Positions 6,553 through 55,451 of a DNA stretch of 64,000 nt are shown here, piece after piece. The notes under the pieces were generated by a model. The model ran no database searches and was not told where the DNA came from. It saw nothing but the letters and a program-made list of their open reading frames with translations. Numbering within the stretch: the stretch's first letter is position 1; every line of letters begins with the position of its first letter. Where the stretch lies: IMG/VR virus record IMGVR_UViG_3300020473_000011, positions 1 through 64,000 of that record; one strand, written 5' to 3'. Made by a program: the position numbers and the translations under genes.

Positions 6553-8454
6553 GTGGTTATAACTAACTGTGTAATAGGCTTTTTAGTGTCTGACGCTGTC
6601 AACAAATTAGTAGAGTCCCTGTCGCATGCAACCACACAGCATGAACGCAATCTAAGCGTACTGCTCAACATGGTAAGGCATGAACGTATTTTTACAGATA
6701 ACGCACTGGCAAACCTGCTTAACTACGCAGGCACCTCAACGCTAAAAGAACACCAGCAAAAGCTTCGGAAGTACATGAAGAGGTTCGACTACTCAGATAG
6801 TTCGGTTGCCTCGTATTCAAGCCGTCTTAAAAAGCTCGTTGCGTACTATCAAGACCATTGCCTATCTGATGAATTACCGACCCAACTAAGCATTGGGGAA
6901 AAGCTTGGGCATCTTGCACGTAAAGAACTTGGCCACTGCTCTCAGAAAGCGCAGCTAGAACACCTGCATAGCCTTAGTGGCATTCCACTGCCGTCGTTAA
7001 AGCGGTGGCTTACTAAAGGTACGAAACCAACCAAGGCACATCAAGACGCACTGTTTAAGCTGGCTGACCATTTCGATGTCTCACGTAACTACTTAACGAT
7101 AGACCCCGTTGCTATGGCCTCACCAGCTACTACCCGTATCGCAAAAGATTCAGTCAAGGCACTGCCCAAGGTTATTTGGGGTGGTCACTTACAGGGTCAG
7201 CTCGACAAGCTCTTGCTTTTCAAGACTAAGGCGCGAACACCCGCGTTATCACTGGCGTCCTTTAAACTGAATCGACGCGAGGCTCAAACACTCGTAGGTG
7301 GTGCTCGTTGGACAACGAATGCCGATGGTAGTAATGCTTCGGGTCAAAACTTTGAACGGATGCTTGACCGCTATTTTCGCTGGTTGTGCTCTAATTATGG
7401 TCTTGAGGCGGAGCAGCTTGACCTCAGTATGTTGCTGGTGGCCGAGTACCTAGAAGCTTATGTGGATGATTGCCTCGATGGTGAGTTCTACGCCACCTTG
7501 CAGACAACATTAAACTTACTTTCAGGCTTAATTGATCCGTTCCAAGGCTACCTTTGCCGCTACCACGCACCATTAACGGGTTATCCTCTCGGAGACGGGC
7601 AAGAGTCCGAGTACTTCGACCAACTAAGTATATGGCAAGAGCACGCCAGTTATATTAATAGCCAAGTTAAGACATGGTTACGTGATGTTCGCCACTTAAT
7701 GGCCGAGCAGCAACATGACAGTGACGACGCAGGTAAGCGGAATATTGGTTGGCTTCTTGATAGCTTAGATAGCACACTAGACCAAAGTGTTGCCGACGTT
7801 CGTCAACTGTCCGCTGATTTAAGCCAGCATAGCAAGCGCCTGACAGGTATTAATCGTCTTGCGCCAGCCCAAGTCAGCCTTTGGCTTCTTATGAGCTTAG
7901 AAGCGCCCCTGCGTGTCTCTAACTGGTGCGCCTTAAAGTTCTCCGACAAAGACCGTAGCAAAGAGCCAATTCTCTTCCGTGATAGTGGGCGTTGGCGTCT
8001 ACGTGTGCCCCGCAGTTACCTCAAGAACAGGCGTGGTCGTGAAGTTGAGGCAATCGATCAGGTTCTTAGTAACCCTCTGATCGGCGAGCTTATCGAACAG
8101 GTTCTCAATTACCGCAAAGAGCATAAAATAGAGACGGATGCAGTCTTTGTACAGACGCGATCAAGTAAGCATCGTAGCGCAGGCGAAGCCTACCAAAGAA
8201 CAGCATTGGCAAAATCAATACAAACTTGGACGGGACGAGCCGCATTCACGCGCTGGCCTGACCGCGACGTGGGGCGTGGCATCAACCCTCATGGTATGCG
8301 ACATTTTGTAGCGAGTTACGTTCTAGATAAGACAGGTGATTATAGACTCGCGGCTACGAGCCTAATGGATAGCGTGGCTGTGGTCATGAATGTCTATGGT
8401 AAAAATGACCACAGCCTAAATCAGAAGAAGCTCGCGGAGCTTCATCGGGTGTAG
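6553..8454 (+). CDS. Large tyrosine recombinase/integrase-like protein with an internal HTH
   Basis: PLRVSNW (R), HGMRH (HxxR), terminal Tyr in VMNVYGK; internal SGIPLPSLKRW HTH-like segment. Confidence 0.8.
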   Translation: MVITNCVIGFLVSDAVNKLVESLSHATTQHERNLSVLLNMVRHERIFTDNALANLLNYAGTSTLKEHQQKLRKYMKRFDYSDSSVASYSSRLKKLVAYYQDHCLSDELPTQLSIGEKLGHLARKELGHCSQKAQLEHLHSLSGIPLPSLKRWLTKGTKPTKAHQDALFKLADHFDVSRNYLTIDPVAMASPATTRIAKDSVKALPKVIWGGHLQGQLDKLLLFKTKARTPALSLASFKLNRREAQTLVGGARWTTNADGSNASGQNFERMLDRYFRWLCSNYGLEAEQLDLSMLLVAEYLEAYVDDCLDGEFYATLQTTLNLLSGLIDPFQGYLCRYHAPLTGYPLGDGQESEYFDQLSIWQEHASYINSQVKTWLRDVRHLMAEQQHDSDDAGKRNIGWLLDSLDSTLDQSVADVRQLSADLSQHSKRLTGINRLAPAQVSLWLLMSLEAPLRVSNWCALKFSDKDRSKEPILFRDSGRWRLRVPRSYLKNRRGREVEAIDQVLSNPLIGELIEQVLNYRKEHKIETDAVFVQTRSSKHRSAGEAYQRTALAKSIQTWTGRAAFTRWPDRDVGRGINPHGMRHFVASYVLDKTGDYRLAATSLMDSVAVVMNVYGKNDHSLNQKKLAELHRV

Positions 8455-37615: not shown

Positions 37616-37763
37616 GTTATTTCTCAGTCTCGTTTATGTACTCATCCTACCAACGCACCATTGGCTTTGCAACTTGTTGCTAAAATCCCCGACCTAGCTG
37701 TATAATTACGTCAAAGGCGCGACTGCCCTATTCCACTGCAACACTAAGAGAACCGAGATAATT

Positions 37764-38288
37764 ATGAATTATCGAGTAAATACGGATTCTGCGCGCCCTC
37801 AGCCCTTTCCACCCCATGGTAGGATTTCTGTAGAGGTTCACGGTACCAATAATGACCTAATCCATGTCAAATGCTTCGGCGCTTTCAATAAAGAAACAAT
37901 GCTAGCCTTAGTCGACATACAACAGCGCTATCGTGATTTATTGTGCCCCAAACGCTACGTGATCGTAGAGTTCATAGACACATGTTTAGCGCTGCCTGAG
38001 TTTTTTGCTGAGGCCACACGTCATCATAAAGAATTGGTTTCCCGTGGCCAGTCCTCAAAGGCCGTTGCTTATGTTATGCGCAAAGGTATCGAGGGTAAGT
38101 CCATGATGAAAGGCTTTTACTTGGGGGTCTATAAAGACGCTGGGATCCCAGTAGTCGTTACTGAGACCGTAGACGAAGCCCGCCAGTGGCTTAAAGAAAA
38201 AGGGCTGGGATCAGCCCAAACTAATGAGAATTGGAGCACACTCGCGGAATCGAACCGCGCTCATGCTGCTTTGCAGGCAGCCACCTAA
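37764..38288 (+). CDS. STAS/SEC14-like hypothetical protein
   Basis: Small alpha/beta pattern ending TVDEARQWL; 3' end overlaps tRNA-Cys antisense. Confidence 0.55.
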   Translation: MNYRVNTDSARPQPFPPHGRISVEVHGTNNDLIHVKCFGAFNKETMLALVDIQQRYRDLLCPKRYVIVEFIDTCLALPEFFAEATRHHKELVSRGQSSKAVAYVMRKGIEGKSMMKGFYLGVYKDAGIPVVVTETVDEARQWLKEKGLGSAQTNENWSTLAESNRAHAALQAAT

Positions 38289-38306
38289 CCACTCAGACAA
38301 GTGTGC
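38232..38306 (-). tRNA. tRNA-Cys(GCA)
   Basis: GCACACT/AGTGTGC acceptor, GCTGC-CT GCA AA-GCAGC anticodon arm, U73, encoded CCA. Confidence 0.95.
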
Positions 38307-38325
38307 GTTGTACAATGAATTAAGT

Positions 38326-38401
38326 TGGCAGGGGCTATAGGACTTGAACCTACAACCTTCGGAGTTGGAAACCGCTGCTCTCCCAATTGAGCTAAGCCCC
38401 T
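38326..38401 (-). tRNA. tRNA-Trp(CCA)
   Basis: AGGGGCT/AGCCCCT acceptor, G73, CCA; anticodon arm GCGGT-TT CCA AC-TCCGA. Confidence 0.93.
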
Positions 38402-38412
38402 GCAATGAAAAG

Positions 38413-38496
38413 TGGTACGGGTAGCGAGGATCGAACTCGCAAGGACATACCGACAGAATTTAAACCTGCTGCGTTTACCAGTTTCGCCATACCCGT
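38413..38496 (-). tRNA. tRNA-Leu(TAA)
   Basis: ACGGGTA/TACCCGT acceptor, A73, long variable region, GCAGG-TT TAA AT-TCTGT. Confidence 0.92.
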
Positions 38497-38502
38497 ATTG
38501 TT

Positions 38503-38590
38503 TGGTGGATAGCCTTGGACTCGAACCAAGAAGCCCTTTAAGGGAGCGGGGTTACAGCCCGCGACGCTACCAATTACGCTCTAACTATCC
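38503..38590 (-). tRNA. tRNA-Tyr(GTA) copy 2
   Basis: GGATAGT/GCTATCC acceptor, GCGGG-CT GTA AC-CCCGC, long variable arm, CCA. Confidence 0.92.
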
Positions 38591-38599
38591 AATAATGTT

Positions 38600-38677
38600 T
38601 GGTGGACACTGGCCAGATTCGAACTGCCGACACTCGGAACTTCAACCCGATGCTCTAACCAACTGAGCTAAGTGTCC
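38600..38677 (-). tRNA. tRNA-Phe(GAA)
   Basis: GGACACT/AGTGTCC acceptor, TCGGG-TT GAA GT-TCCGA, CCA; one extra G in the T-stem. Confidence 0.9.
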
Positions 38678-38687
38678 ACACTAAAAG

Positions 38688-38776
38688 TGGTGGATGAGGT
38701 AAGACTCGAACTTACAAAACCCTAAAGGGCAACGGGGTTACAGCCCGCGACGCTACCAATTACGTGTTACTCATCC
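38688..38776 (-). tRNA. tRNA-Tyr(GTA) copy 1
   Basis: GGATGAG/CTCATCC acceptor, GCGGG-CT GTA AC-CCCGT, long variable arm, CCA. Confidence 0.92.
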
Positions 38777-38790
38777 AAAAAATCTTTGTA

Positions 38791-39009
38791 CTACTCTACG
38801 TTGAGGCGTTCACCGTTCGGTAGTACAAGGGATAGCTCCACATGCCCACCAAGTGCCTCGACGTAAGCTGCCAGTTTAGTCACAGACAACTGTTTAATTT
38901 CCTTGCCTTCAAGTTTGCTGACACTTGAATCGCTAACCCGCATTTGAGCGGCAATGACCTCTTGCTTTACTTTTAGCTCTTTTCTGAGGTCTTTTAGATT
39001 AGGTTGCAT
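38791..39009 (-). CDS. XRE-family HTH protein (HigA-antitoxin-like)
   Basis: LKDLRKEL..KQEVIA..M.VSDSSVSKLE...LAAYVEALGGHVEL. Confidence 0.85.
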   Translation of the reverse strand: MQPNLKDLRKELKVKQEVIAAQMRVSDSSVSKLEGKEIKQLSVTKLAAYVEALGGHVELSLVLPNGERLNVE

Positions 39010-39038
39010 TTTGGTGTTCCTACTATGCGTAGGGCATT

Positions 39039-39073
39039 AAAAAAGCCCAGTGATAAATCAGCTGGGCTTTTTT
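39039..39073 (-). terminator. Attenuator terminator upstream of the HTH-tRNA operon
   Basis: AAAAAAGCCCAG-CTGATTTATCA-CTGGGCTTTTTT on the minus strand. Confidence 0.9.
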
Positions 39074-39141
39074 GACTAACGTCACATGGTCTGTTCCGAC
39101 CTGCCCAGAAGCTACCGCCCCCGAGCCTAGTTTCTCGGGGA
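39039..39141 (-). promoter_or_regulatory. Transcription attenuator with alternative hairpins
   Basis: CCCCGAG/CUCGGGG versus GCUCGGGGGC/GCUUCUGGGC versus CUGGGC/GCCCAG versus terminator. Confidence 0.8.
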
Positions 39142-39142
39142 A

Positions 39143-39187
39143 CTATCTAAATAAATAACACCAAAAATATAACGCTACGTTAGCCAT
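39143..39187 (-). CDS. Leader peptide MANVALYFWCYLFR (not in ORF track)
   Basis: ATG GCT AAC GTA GCG TTA TAT TTT TGG TGT TAT TTA TTT AGA TAG; TAAGG SD upstream. Confidence 0.88.
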   Translation of the reverse strand: MANVALYFWCYLFR

Positions 39188-39243
39188 GTCTTTCAACCTT
39201 AAAAAAAGTAAATTCGTGTAGCTCTCAATGAGCTGATATGACA

Positions 39244-39272
39244 ACTATAGCGTGACCCCTGAAAATTGCCAA
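39244..39272 (-). promoter_or_regulatory. Sigma70 promoter for the leader-HTH-tRNA operon
   Basis: TTGGCA-17 bp-TATAGT on the minus strand. Confidence 0.75.
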
Positions 39273-39282
39273 ACACTTTAGC

Positions 39283-39307
39283 TTTCCAAAATAGAAAGTT
39301 TTGGAAA
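39283..39307. promoter_or_regulatory. Inverted repeat, candidate operator between divergent promoters
   Basis: TTTCCAAAA-TAGAAAG-TTTTGGAAA. Confidence 0.5.
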
Positions 39308-39553
39308 TTAAGAACTTGACGCGGGTTTGTCGCGACGTGTAATATGCTGCGTAACACGGGGGATTCCCTTGAAACCCATGTGTGCCCAAGGGCTTTTATA
39401 AGTCCTCGCTGCTAGCAGGTACCCACACAGCGGTACTGCCAAACTATGACGCTTTAATGTGACTAGACCAAATTCTTAAAACCCTGTATTTAACGCGGGT
39501 GACTTTTGGAACGCTAGCGAAGTCTATATCCGCGTGAAGATATAGAGGTTTCG

Positions 39554-53417: not shown

Positions 53418-55451
53418 TTAGAATGTAACTTTAACTACGCGGTTAAATGAACCGCTAACTTTAACTAGTAACGCGTTGCGCTGCGTTGATGAAAAACCAA
53501 GACCGCTTAGCTGGTCATCTGTAGGGTCGGCCTTCAACTTAGAACCGAGTGCTTCAAATACCTTGCGGTGTTTGTTCAGTTCAGGTGCTAAGTTTTCGTT
53601 GTAGAATCCACGGATCTTGTCAGGTGACTGGCAGCCCTCTAGCATGAAGAAGAAGTGCTTATTACCAGTCTCTTCACCGTCCCAGTGGTTCGGTGAGTTC
53701 ATTACCATTGATACTTTTGACCATTGATGTGTGTTAACACCCCACTCTTGGCGTGAAGCCTCTGACCCTTTGATTGAGCTGATGATCTTGACGCCCTCAC
53801 TGTGCGAGTAGTCGAACTCAAGCACTATGATACTGCGGCCGTTTTGTAGTGCGTCTTTGTGTTCAAACTTAATGGTATTCCCGAAGTACTCAAATTCTAA
53901 AACAAAGCCAAAATCAATACGTTCACGTTGACGGAAGTTCTTCACCCGTACGCGATGGCGACCCTCTTGCATACGTGAACGGTCGGCATAGGCAATGTTT
54001 TCAACGGGTGTGCGTGAGTCGACACCCGTCGCGTTCATATCAATATCAAGGAACCCACCTGTGCGATAGCTTTTCTTGGAAGTAAAGTCGATCACATTAC
54101 CGTCAGGCTCTTCCATGCTAAGGTCTAAGTCGTCGCCATTGAACCATGCTAGAGAACTACGCACGTCCGCGTTGACATTACCGCCTGCGGCCTTAACCAA
54201 CTGGGTAATAGAAGCGTCGGCCAACTCGCCATTATAGCTCCAAGAGAAGTTGTTAGGCCACTTCAACATATTAGGCGCATCAGGGTACACAGGCGCAACA
54301 AGGCTGACCAGATTCGGCACATGTCGGTTTTCCATCATGACTTCAAGACTAGTGGCCTTTGGTAGCACATCTGCTACGAAGTCCTCAATGCTAATCTCTT
54401 CGACCTTATCGAACTTTTGCTTATTGTTGGCCTTTGTAGGCGCGAGAAGGTCAAGCGCATTACCCTTCATTTTCTTTTGAGCATCACGGTCGGCGAAGAG
54501 CACGTTATTCACTGTGATGTCTTCTAACCGAGCTGGGCGGCGGTAAAGCGAGTCTTCGAAGCCAAGCTGTATGATGGTCTCATTCGCTTCATCGATCTGC
54601 TTTTGTGTGATAAGGGCAGTTGGGCGCTTATAGTTCTCAGGCGCAACCTTCGCTTCATAAGATTTTACGGCATCTTCTAGGTCGCTGCCTTCGGAAAGGT
54701 CTGATAAGAGCGTCCCCATAGAAGTGTTGCGAAAACGGCCACTGTTACCAAGTTCTACAGACTTTTCCCAGAAAAACAGTTGTTCTTTTAGTGGGTCATC
54801 TAGTTTTTCTATGCGAGCGAACTCAGTTTTAACCTTAACGAGCGTGTCAACGATATGCTTGAACTCTTCACCGCGATACAAGGATCCCTGTGCAATTAGG
54901 TCACTTACTAACTCACACGAATAAAGGTCTACCTCACGTACGGAGCGCTCTAGTACCATTTTGTTAGCACGGGTGTCTGAAAGGTATGAGCCAGCCTCGG
55001 CATTTACAAACTTGTTAGGTAGGTCAAAATAGAAGTGTTCCCACTTCTTCTGTTCACCATTGGCCATAGGCTCAAAGTTGTGAGAAGTGCCCACGCGGGT
55101 TTCCCAGTGACGATACACATTCTGGATAGAGTCGCTATGTTGGCGTACGAAAAGGGAAAGTGCGTCAGCTACGGCCTGACGGAAGTCACTAAGCTCAATA
55201 TCCCACACTGTAACTAGTTTGCCATCAATGATAGCAATAACATTACCAATATTTCGGATGAAGTTGCGGCAGCAAGCGCAATCGTGTTCAGTACGTTCGC
55301 GATAAAGAGGGTTGGTGCCTTTAGGGAAGCTTGAAAGATATTCGTTGTACAACTCGTCTTTATTTAACTCGACGGTGTATAGCTCAGTGCTGTTTTCGGT
55401 CATATACGCTAACTGCGCATTAACAGCGTCACGCATGGCATTAAAGCTCAT
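53418..55451 (-). CDS. Large phage-type conserved protein (HxCxxC motif; DLDL/LDIDMN/PVENI domain)
   Basis: EHDCACCRNFI, WPNNFSWSYNG, DDLDL, LDIDMN, PVENI. Confidence 0.8.
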   Translation of the reverse strand: MSFNAMRDAVNAQLAYMTENSTELYTVELNKDELYNEYLSSFPKGTNPLYRERTEHDCACCRNFIRNIGNVIAIIDGKLVTVWDIELSDFRQAVADALSLFVRQHSDSIQNVYRHWETRVGTSHNFEPMANGEQKKWEHFYFDLPNKFVNAEAGSYLSDTRANKMVLERSVREVDLYSCELVSDLIAQGSLYRGEEFKHIVDTLVKVKTEFARIEKLDDPLKEQLFFWEKSVELGNSGRFRNTSMGTLLSDLSEGSDLEDAVKSYEAKVAPENYKRPTALITQKQIDEANETIIQLGFEDSLYRRPARLEDITVNNVLFADRDAQKKMKGNALDLLAPTKANNKQKFDKVEEISIEDFVADVLPKATSLEVMMENRHVPNLVSLVAPVYPDAPNMLKWPNNFSWSYNGELADASITQLVKAAGGNVNADVRSSLAWFNGDDLDLSMEEPDGNVIDFTSKKSYRTGGFLDIDMNATGVDSRTPVENIAYADRSRMQEGRHRVRVKNFRQRERIDFGFVLEFEYFGNTIKFEHKDALQNGRSIIVLEFDYSHSEGVKIISSIKGSEASRQEWGVNTHQWSKVSMVMNSPNHWDGEETGNKHFFFMLEGCQSPDKIRGFYNENLAPELNKHRKVFEALGSKLKADPTDDQLSGLGFSSTQRNALLVKVSGSFNRVVKVTF

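Follow-up and report, generated by a model that had tools for sequence, protein, structure and literature searches.

A Probable Leader-Peptide Attenuator Ahead of a Phage tRNA Operon, Written in the Codons of the Operon's Own tRNAs

The leader peptide is encoded by codons of the operon tRNAs

The 64,000-nucleotide stretch of DNA analyzed here (positions 1 to 64,000 of IMG/VR virus record IMGVR_UViG_3300020473_000011; hereafter, the window) carries on its minus strand an operon composed of a gene for a small helix-turn-helix (HTH) protein and six tRNA genes. This operon is very probably gated by a ribosome-mediated leader-peptide transcription attenuator. The leader open reading frame (ORF) at 39187-39143 on the minus strand has 14 codons (MANVALYFWCYLFR) and a UAG stop, is preceded by the Shine-Dalgarno (SD) sequence AAGG (39200-39197), which sits 9 nt ahead of the AUG at 39187, and is kept in all lineages. 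Its codons 6 to 13, UUA UAU UUU UGG UGU UAU UUA UUU (LYFWCYLF), are exactly the codons of the operon tRNAs, which are Tyr, Phe, Tyr, Leu(UAA), Trp, and Cys. Across all six frames of the window, runs of at least eight codons read by these tRNAs are found in the leader only, with 0.04 expected. The Tyr, Phe, and Cys codons of the leader are all U ending and Leu is encoded by UUA only; in the long ORFs of the phage, the U-ending codons of Tyr, Phe, and Cys account for 44 to 54% of usage and UUA for 19%. These control codons finish 5 nt ahead of the first helix of the attenuator, helix A.

Four mutually exclusive helices follow the leader stop codon

A first-pass annotation of this DNA had proposed four helices past the leader, and each of them is present where it was placed on the minus strand. 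Helix A (39119 to 39140), formed by CCCCGAG (39140-39134) and CUCGGGG (39125-39119), has 7 bp and an 8-nt loop and begins 2 nt past the leader stop (UAG at 39145-39143, then UU). It would protect its second strand from pairing in helix B (39103 to 39126), where GCUCGGGGGC (39126-39117), the loop GGUA, and GCUUCUGGGC (39112-39103) form 10 pairs, four of them G-U. Helix B, in turn, would sequester the antiterminator strand CUGGGC. In antiterminator C (39062 to 39108, by folding), CUGGGC (39108-39103) pairs with GCCCAG (39067-39062) and encloses two mini-hairpins, GGUC/GACC (39101-39098/39091-39088) and UGAC/GUCA (39084-39081/39076-39073). The intrinsic terminator D (39039 to 39073) consists of an A-run, GCCCAG (39067-39062) paired with CUGGGC (39050-39045), an inner UGA/UCA pairing set off by a single c, and a U6 tract (39044-39039), and it looks bidirectional. 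Helices A and B, B and C, and C and D each have a common strand, so neighboring helices exclude each other, as had been claimed.

Folding energies calculated with ViennaRNA are −12.6 to −14.1 kcal/mol for A and −14.7 to −16.1 kcal/mol for B, making these two helices nearly isoenergetic. The C helix contributes approximately −9.6 kcal/mol atop the mini-hairpins, and D has −12.6 kcal/mol, or −18.5 kcal/mol with flanking A:U pairs. The minimum free energy (MFE) of the 111 nt from 39145 to 39035 is −45.2 kcal/mol, compared with −29.9 ± 3.3 kcal/mol in 200 dinucleotide shuffles (z = −4.59), none of which folds as well. When the 75 nt upstream of GCCCAG were shuffled 3,000 times, 14% of the shuffles formed some antiterminator, and 39 (1.3%) formed one that was lost on masking of the first 10 nt.

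Two additional pairings were observed on the same strand. GGGCA (39106-39102) can pair with UGCCC (39036-39032) just past the U-tract, which may stabilize the read-through RNA or belong to the switch; a GCCC motif past the U-tract recurs in three distant loci (L147, L155, and L144; see below). The leader start region UGGCUAACGU (39186-39177) can pair with ACGUUAGUCA (39082-39073), in the region of the second mini-hairpin. A G-U pair of this helix is turned into A-U in homologs, and the helix favors B plus D in MFE folds computed with no ribosome.

Simulated ribosome positions switch the fold

The transcript was folded with a ribosome footprint moved codon by codon, with downstream footprints of 8 to 15 nt, and the proposed switch was reproduced. 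With the A site on codons 6 to 12/13, helix A retains seven of its seven pairs, and C gains six of six once GCCCAG has been made. Once the A site has moved to codon 13/14 or to the stop, helix A is gone, B is complete (10/10), C is absent (0/6), and the terminator is free. The change from A plus C to B is the same for all footprints in this range. These folds agree with the logic of the first-pass annotation, in which a ribosome at the stop melts A, B forms, CUGGGC is hidden, and D is free. That annotation had also placed the stall at codons 6 to 10; such a stall does leave A intact and allows C to form in the folds, with the correction that the sensing range is codons 6 to 13.

Scans of the whole-transcript MFE were confounded by spurious pairing of the 5' region, and the RNA downstream of the ribosome was folded alone instead, with the same clean switch. 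When no ribosome is included, local folds contain A and C, the read-through configuration. Among 10 loci modeled, the switch between the control codons and the stop was seen in 7, namely, the window, L001, L005, and L009 (close relatives), and L142, L147, and L151 (distant relatives).

Close relatives conserve the paired strands and vary in the loops

Beyond its own, the HTH protein is represented by just three 90% clusters among 5.8 billion. The contigs recovered in this way (L001 to L009) carry the same promoter, leader, helices, and HTH gene, with five tRNAs (Tyr, Phe, Tyr, Trp, and Cys). A comparison of four lineages from the leader stop to U6 revealed a single variable position among the 39 that make up the strands of A to D, and this change (C39103 to U, in L001 to L004) leaves B and C each with a wobble pair at this place. 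Variation occurs at 6 of 61 paired and 18 of 43 unpaired positions (Fisher P = 2.6e-4), with loops and linkers varying freely; in helix A, the arms are invariant and the loop is variable.

In the leader, codons 2 to 6 vary, and codons 7 to 15 are invariant except for a synonymous change to CUA at codon 12 in L009. Codon 6 follows the tRNA content of the operon. The window lineage and one further lineage (L131) have a gene for tRNA-Leu(UAA), which is absent from L001 to L009, and the lineages that lack it have UUU, not UUA, at codon 6; UUA occurs there only where tRNA-Leu is known to be present. In L001 to L004, a 31-nt hairpin insert stands between the second tRNA-Tyr and tRNA-Trp in place of tRNA-Leu.

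Several routes to more members were tried and set aside. A downstream 167-amino-acid protein used as an anchor retrieved the one further lineage (L131, with Leu, Trp, and Cys tRNAs), on a contig without the leader. A degenerate leader pattern searched in viral contigs matched at least 119 loci, nearly all of them chance T-rich matches because Phe had been accepted as well in place of Leu; L038, from the same phage, was the only one with tRNAs downstream. Searches of metagenome, viral, and genome collections with the HTH locus and with an attenuator DNA pattern yielded either this phage again or no match, apart from one unrelated Acidobacteria HTH gene without tRNAs that was retrieved by the HTH locus searches.

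Distant relatives pair other leader codons with matching tRNAs

A hidden Markov model of the HTH protein, run against 1.8 billion representatives, identified distant members with approximately 40 to 47% identity. Seven loci were fetched, and six of them carry a leader, an attenuator, and tRNAs. Leaders of the HHH type accompany tRNA-His in three lineages: L142 (leader MTFTSIHHCHFAD), L147 (leader MALRFYHHHNHS), and L155 to L157 (leader MTNARHHHLIS). The leader of L151, MSSHACFYCYWCFFN, contains the run CFYCYWCFF and is associated with tRNAs Cys, Trp-like, Cys, Trp, Phe, and Tyr. In L154, on the chromosome of Ferrimonas marina, the leader ends in RYSYSSIT, with the codons UAU UCG UAU UCA UCC, and the locus carries Ser(CGA), Tyr, and Ser(UGA) tRNAs, then the HTH gene. 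Set out as a matrix, leaders and tRNA sets match along the diagonal, and of the 24 permutations of four independent classes, the real combination ranks first.

The L154 locus lies on contig BCTE01000003.1 of GCA_001571125.1, from a cultivable bacterium; in L154 coordinates, its leader is at 916-1008. Its gene order differs from that of the phage, the HTH gene standing after the tRNAs, and all three of its tRNAs have long variable arms.

The chain of helices A, B, C, and D is present in every distant locus, starting 0 to 3 nt past the leader stop, and in nine loci overall; all family members have a canonical U6 terminator together with an antiterminator that matches it. The His-type loci share two homologous elements with the phage, strand 3 (GCUUCUGGGY) and GCCCAG. 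Across six distinct sequences, pairing in helix B is 100%, compared with 28 to 67% in slid registers, and the changes in B comprise one compensatory exchange between G-C and A-U and three one-sided changes (two from G-U to A-U and one from U-G to C-G). Helix A is replaced by other complementary arms at the same place in L147 (CUCCUGA/UCAGGAG), L155 (CGUUCCUG/CAGGAGCG), L142, L151, and L154. In L151 and L154, all four helices are of unrelated sequence and the topology is unchanged. The covariation anticipated for these helices was thus found in part: B covaries and A is rebuilt across the family, whereas A, C, and D show no compensatory change in close relatives.

Proposed mechanism of attenuation

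In the mechanism proposed here, a sigma-70-type promoter would start the transcript and a ribosome would translate the 14-codon leader, with codons 6 to 13 predicted to depend for decoding on tRNA-Leu(UAA), Tyr, Phe, Trp, and Cys alone, the kinds that the operon itself encodes. Slow decoding, from too little functional tRNA of any of these five kinds, would stall the ribosome upstream of helix A. Helix A would then stay folded and hold its second strand, CUGGGC would pair with GCCCAG in C, the terminator would be blocked, and the polymerase would read on into the operon. With fast decoding, the ribosome would arrive at the stop, 2 nt before A, and unwind this helix, so that B hides CUGGGC and D is predicted to end transcription at U6. 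The tRNA products would speed decoding of the sensor, a negative feedback that would match tRNA supply to demand. A second loop, formed by the HTH protein acting on an inverted repeat beside the −35 hexamer, is likely.

RNA-library coverage and points that weigh against attenuation

The RNA evidence consists of metatranscriptome contigs, which carry neither strand nor true ends. One run contained a 151-nt piece from a close strain that covers 39185 to 39039 and ends at the last U of the terminator, at a depth of about 3 and with the downstream region uncovered; such a piece would be expected of an attenuated leader RNA. In two other runs, X12 and X13, pieces that cover 38735-39083 or 38735-39073 have the highest local depth and extend from the terminator through the HTH gene into the beginning of the first tRNA.

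Several observations weigh against the attenuator reading. MFE modeling fails to reproduce the switch in L155, because helix B is too strong there, and in L144, and it is noisy in L154. Terminator D is part of the full-length MFE structure in every ribosome state, so C can act only kinetically; according to the model, C, with 6 bp around a 35-nt loop, has to prevail in this competition. The MFE structure without a ribosome is ambiguous between B with a long-range helix (leader start to 39082-39073) and A with C. Mini-hairpin 2 lacks its outer pair in L001 to L004, and mini-hairpins are missing from some family members. No compensatory change in A, C, or D was seen among the close relatives, and the known lineages number only four to eight. 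In the bacterial loci L144 to L146, no tRNA is detectable downstream despite a leader (MLNVSTGYFYNFNY, with the run YFYNFNY; 1328-1372 in L144), an attenuator, and an HTH gene. The tRNAs are therefore not obligatory cargo, the HTH gene being the constant cargo, and the HTH gene may be the core regulated gene. Finally, 39144-39511 is uncovered in X12 and X13, where other genes also lose 70 to 135 nt or more at their 5' ends; this coverage is compatible with a transcript that includes the leader and would also fit processing or an unrecognized internal promoter.

The coverage in X12 and X13, whose contigs begin at 39083 and 39073 and leave the leader uncovered, would be expected if the short ORF, the helices, and the terminator were a separate small-RNA or micropeptide gene or an antisense terminator, with the HTH-tRNA operon using its own promoter or processing site near 39085. 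The symmetry of the terminator, with an A-run and a T-run, would also suit this explanation, which we nevertheless regard as highly improbable. A promoter scan found no promoter-like site between 39143 and 39009, and only 25 nt separate U6 from the start of the HTH gene, leaving no room for another promoter. The 5' ends of other genes are lost in these runs as well, and a separate gene leaves unexplained the match between codons and tRNAs, its recurrence, and the conserved alternative helices.

The loci without tRNAs also bear on what the leader senses. L144 to L146, which keep the leader, attenuator, and HTH gene without tRNAs, and the presence of an HTH gene in every family member would be consistent with a sensor of amino acid starvation (uncharged tRNA) that controls the HTH regulator, the tRNA genes being cotranscribed passengers; any leader-peptide attenuator answers to the supply of charged tRNA. 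Such a sensor is unlikely, however: in seven lineages, the choice of leader codons follows which tRNAs are encoded next to them, even to the level of UCG/UCA where these are Ser(CGA)/Ser(UGA) and of UUA where there is Leu(UAA). Furthermore, five unrelated amino acids would make an unnatural single signal, and tRNA synthesis gives no relief from starvation. A uracil phosphoribosyltransferase gene follows in L144 to L146, which may be a decayed module or a regulator-only version.

HTH protein, putative operator, and tRNA genes

The promoter of the operon (39244 to 39272, minus strand) is sigma-70-like, TTGGCA-17-TATAGT, with 10 of 12 consensus matches, a predicted start near 39237, and both hexamers conserved in homologs. 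The predicted transcript opens with a 5'-terminal hairpin, AGCUC/GAGCU (39220 to 39234), whose arms are invariant and whose loop is different in each lineage. Just upstream of the −35 hexamer, an operator-like inverted repeat (TTTCCAAAA ... TTTTGGAAA, core CTTTC-N7-GAAAG) occupies 39282 to 39307 on the minus strand; it is unique in the window and invariant in close homologs. A TTTCC-N-GGAAA repeat stands beside the −35 hexamer, approximately 80 to 115 nt upstream of the leader AUG, in L151, L147, L154, and L144; it is degenerate in L155 and was not found in L142. This conserved inverted repeat is probably the operator of the HTH protein.

The HTH gene (38791 to 39009, minus strand) is the first gene past the attenuator and encodes a 72-amino-acid, HigA-like protein of the HTH_37/HTH_3 type. 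It matches Pfam HTH_37 at 2.4e-7 and, with the family profile, HigA3 in the PDB at 2.7e-12; its nearest solved relatives are the antitoxins HigA3 and HigA2 (PDB 6lty and 7ewc). No toxin gene (HigB, RelE, or ParE) stands beside the HTH gene, whose neighbors are only the leader and the tRNAs. Plasmid homologs of the HTH protein were considered as members of the module and rejected: two neighborhoods were inspected, neither with tRNAs, one holding a HigA-like antitoxin beside a RelE/ParE toxin and the other a standalone XRE regulator.

A hairpin with invariant arms, CCUAC/GUAGG (39019 to 39033, minus strand; loops GCAUA, GCUA, and GUACA), lies partly over the SD sequence of the HTH gene and is presumably functional. 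In addition, UUUUGGUGUU (leader codons 8 to 10, 39166-39157) is the perfect 10-nt complement of AACACCAAAA (39017-39008) on the minus strand, between the SD sequence and AUG of the HTH gene, and close homologs keep 9 bp of this pairing, which could couple leader occupancy to HTH translation. Leader translation might accordingly serve mainly to control translation of the HTH gene by long-range pairing, not transcription termination, and the conserved SD-covering hairpin and long-range complement would both favor this. We consider it improbable as the main function: the terminator with U6 and its matched antiterminator are there in all family members, whereas the long-range complement was seen in the phage lineages, the only ones compared, and it could be an extra layer on the attenuator rather than an alternative to it.

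The six tRNA genes (38232 to 38776, minus strand) begin 14 nt past the HTH stop and encode tRNA-Tyr(GUA) (38776-38688), tRNA-Phe(GAA) (38677-38600), a second tRNA-Tyr(GUA) (38590-38503), tRNA-Leu(UAA) (38496-38413), tRNA-Trp(CCA) (38401-38326), and tRNA-Cys(GCA) (38306-38232). The operon is closed by a terminator-like hairpin, GGGCUG/CAGCCC (38217-38202), with a T-run (38195 to 38217 in total). All six tRNAs read UNN codons, and CCA is encoded in all six genes. Several anticodon loops are unusual: UUGAAGU (G37, U38) in tRNA-Phe of all lineages and, in the window lineage, CUGUAAC (C38) in both Tyr tRNAs, UUCCAAC in Trp, and UUUAAAU in Leu. The idea that the set was assembled as MiaA (i6A37) substrates, all codons being UNN, lost weight, given G37 in the phage tRNA-Phe and C38 in the Tyr tRNAs of the window.

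Possible role of the circuit

If the attenuator operates as proposed, its role may be that of a portable "tRNA-stat," in which a leader written in the operon's own codons measures decoding capacity and induces replacement tRNAs and a HigA-like regulator, answering tRNA-cleaving immunity or toxins and, more generally, codon-supply mismatch with the host, in phages and mobile islands. The circuit would be programmable because the leader codons change with the cargo, and no earlier example would exist of tRNA genes whose control lies in the translation of their own codons. We put this role forward tentatively, as one possibility.

With the same attenuator, the purpose could be counter-defense in particular, in that the leader would sense the loss of host tRNAs to tRNA-cleaving immunity or toxins and induce replacements together with the HigA-like regulator. 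As cited in PMC13462974, phage tRNAs rescue infection from tRNA-cleaving defenses, such as PtuAB of retron-Eco7 acting on tRNA-Tyr, and the same text cites Azam et al. (2024) for phage tRNAs as counter-defense. The unusual anticodon loops of the phage Phe, Tyr, and Trp tRNAs, the relationship of the HTH protein to HigA antitoxins, and the location of bacterial copies near integrase or island-like genes would all be in keeping with this purpose. Restricting the circuit to counter-defense nevertheless appears rather doubtful. No defense or toxin partner was identified, one copy is chromosomal, in F. marina, and simple codon-supply homeostasis would be served by the same circuit; moreover, the anticodon-loop comparison covers phage tRNAs only.

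The attenuator described here bears on whether phages monitor the tRNA pool of the host and induce tRNAs upon its cleavage, and on the role of the conserved HigA-like regulator. F. marina is a cultivable carrier in which experiments are possible, and the module could serve as a natural biosensor of codon-specific translation speed.

Relation to known regulatory systems

The element has the structural features of leader-peptide attenuators and matches no curated leader family. Rfam leader families were absent at gathering and at permissive thresholds from the window and from L147, L155, L151, and L154, where only chance-level Thr_leader matches, falling on the terminator, were seen; the T-box gave no Rfam match even at E values up to 10. 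Leader-peptide attenuation of tRNA genes is undescribed in the full-text literature searched, which mostly left subscription journals uncovered, and an older account is possible.

The likeness to the his attenuator (hisL; His_leader) noted in the first-pass annotation holds in outline: both have a short leader ORF, a run of control codons, successive exclusive helices, a terminator, and a ribosome whose position decides the outcome. The likeness is loose, because the place of the control codons and the default state differ. The his attenuator has six strands, compared with five here, and its control codons are inside the first strand, whereas here they are upstream of it, so stalling leaves helix A intact and acts like no ribosome (default ON). 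In his, a stalled ribosome masks strand A and the lack of translation leads to termination; here, lack of translation should lead to read-through. Finally, his senses one amino acid and makes biosynthetic enzymes, whereas five are sensed here and the products are tRNAs and a regulator.

The trp attenuator (trpL) is similar in its 14-codon leader and in a kinetic competition decided by the ribosome, its terminator likewise being the more stable helix; the element described here differs in having one extra helix layer, another target, and several control amino acids. The hairpin just past the leader may be a pause site, since G39116, U39107, and G39106 fit the pause consensus, G-10/Y-1/G+1. Multivalent leaders (thr, ilvGMEDA, and ilvBN) also have mixed codons, and shortage of any one amino acid relieves termination, but their codons correspond to the end products of the pathway, whereas those of the present leader correspond to the operon's own tRNA genes. 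Leader-peptide attenuation has reportedly been described for a gene of the translation machinery, E. coli pheST with its pheM leader (Fayat, Springer, and others, 1983). There, too, a translation component is controlled by the decoding of cognate codons, with a synthetase in place of tRNA genes and a single amino acid. T-box riboswitches also use a terminator and an antiterminator to read tRNA status for translation-related genes, but they bind uncharged tRNA directly, without a leader peptide.

Growth-rate and stringent mechanisms acting at promoters are regarded as the main control of bacterial tRNA genes, and those of phages are generally viewed as cargo that is simply expressed. Clusters of tRNA genes are found in other large phage genomes, such as those of T4, T5, and KVP40; to our knowledge, and as far as could be found, no attenuator with a leader of cognate codons stands ahead of these clusters. 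HigA-type antitoxins and the HTH protein belong to one fold family, HTH_37, and one plasmid homolog lies beside a RelE/ParE toxin gene, but the HTH protein of the window has only 72 amino acids, no adjacent toxin gene, and a location inside a tRNA operon behind an attenuator.

The system is best described as a variant of leader-peptide attenuation that is new in its regulated genes, which are the tRNAs that read the leader. Its members, from a marine megaphage and from marine bacteria, make up a family that is small and modular. Textbook attenuation is here turned onto tRNA genes, with the sensor written in the codons of the cargo tRNAs, and would provide demand-driven feedback on decoding capacity. 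The modular design is represented by His, Ser/Tyr, Cys/Phe/Tyr/Trp, and Leu/Tyr/Phe/Trp/Cys versions.

Genomic setting

The same sequence is also found on assemblies of 416 to 420 kb and on a 281-kb IMG/VR viral contig; given these and a phage-type protein described below, the source of the window is a very large marine phage of approximately 416 kb. Almost all neighboring ORFs lack a Pfam family, and no nucleotide relative of the window was found in the phage GenBank collection. A 174-amino-acid ORF (37764-38288, plus strand) lies antisense over tRNA-Cys and the operon terminator; it is a gene call in some assemblies, has no Pfam family, is covered by RNA contigs only over 37654-38046, and is possibly not a real gene. 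A 633-amino-acid ORF (6553-8454, plus strand) has a weak C-terminal match to phage integrases, below the Pfam cutoff. A 677-amino-acid protein (53418-55451, minus strand) matches the phage-only family phrog_1735 at 2e-265 and has approximately 50% identity to proteins of jumbo-like myoviruses of Klebsiella and Salmonella; a few myovirus records name its relatives DNA-directed RNA polymerase.

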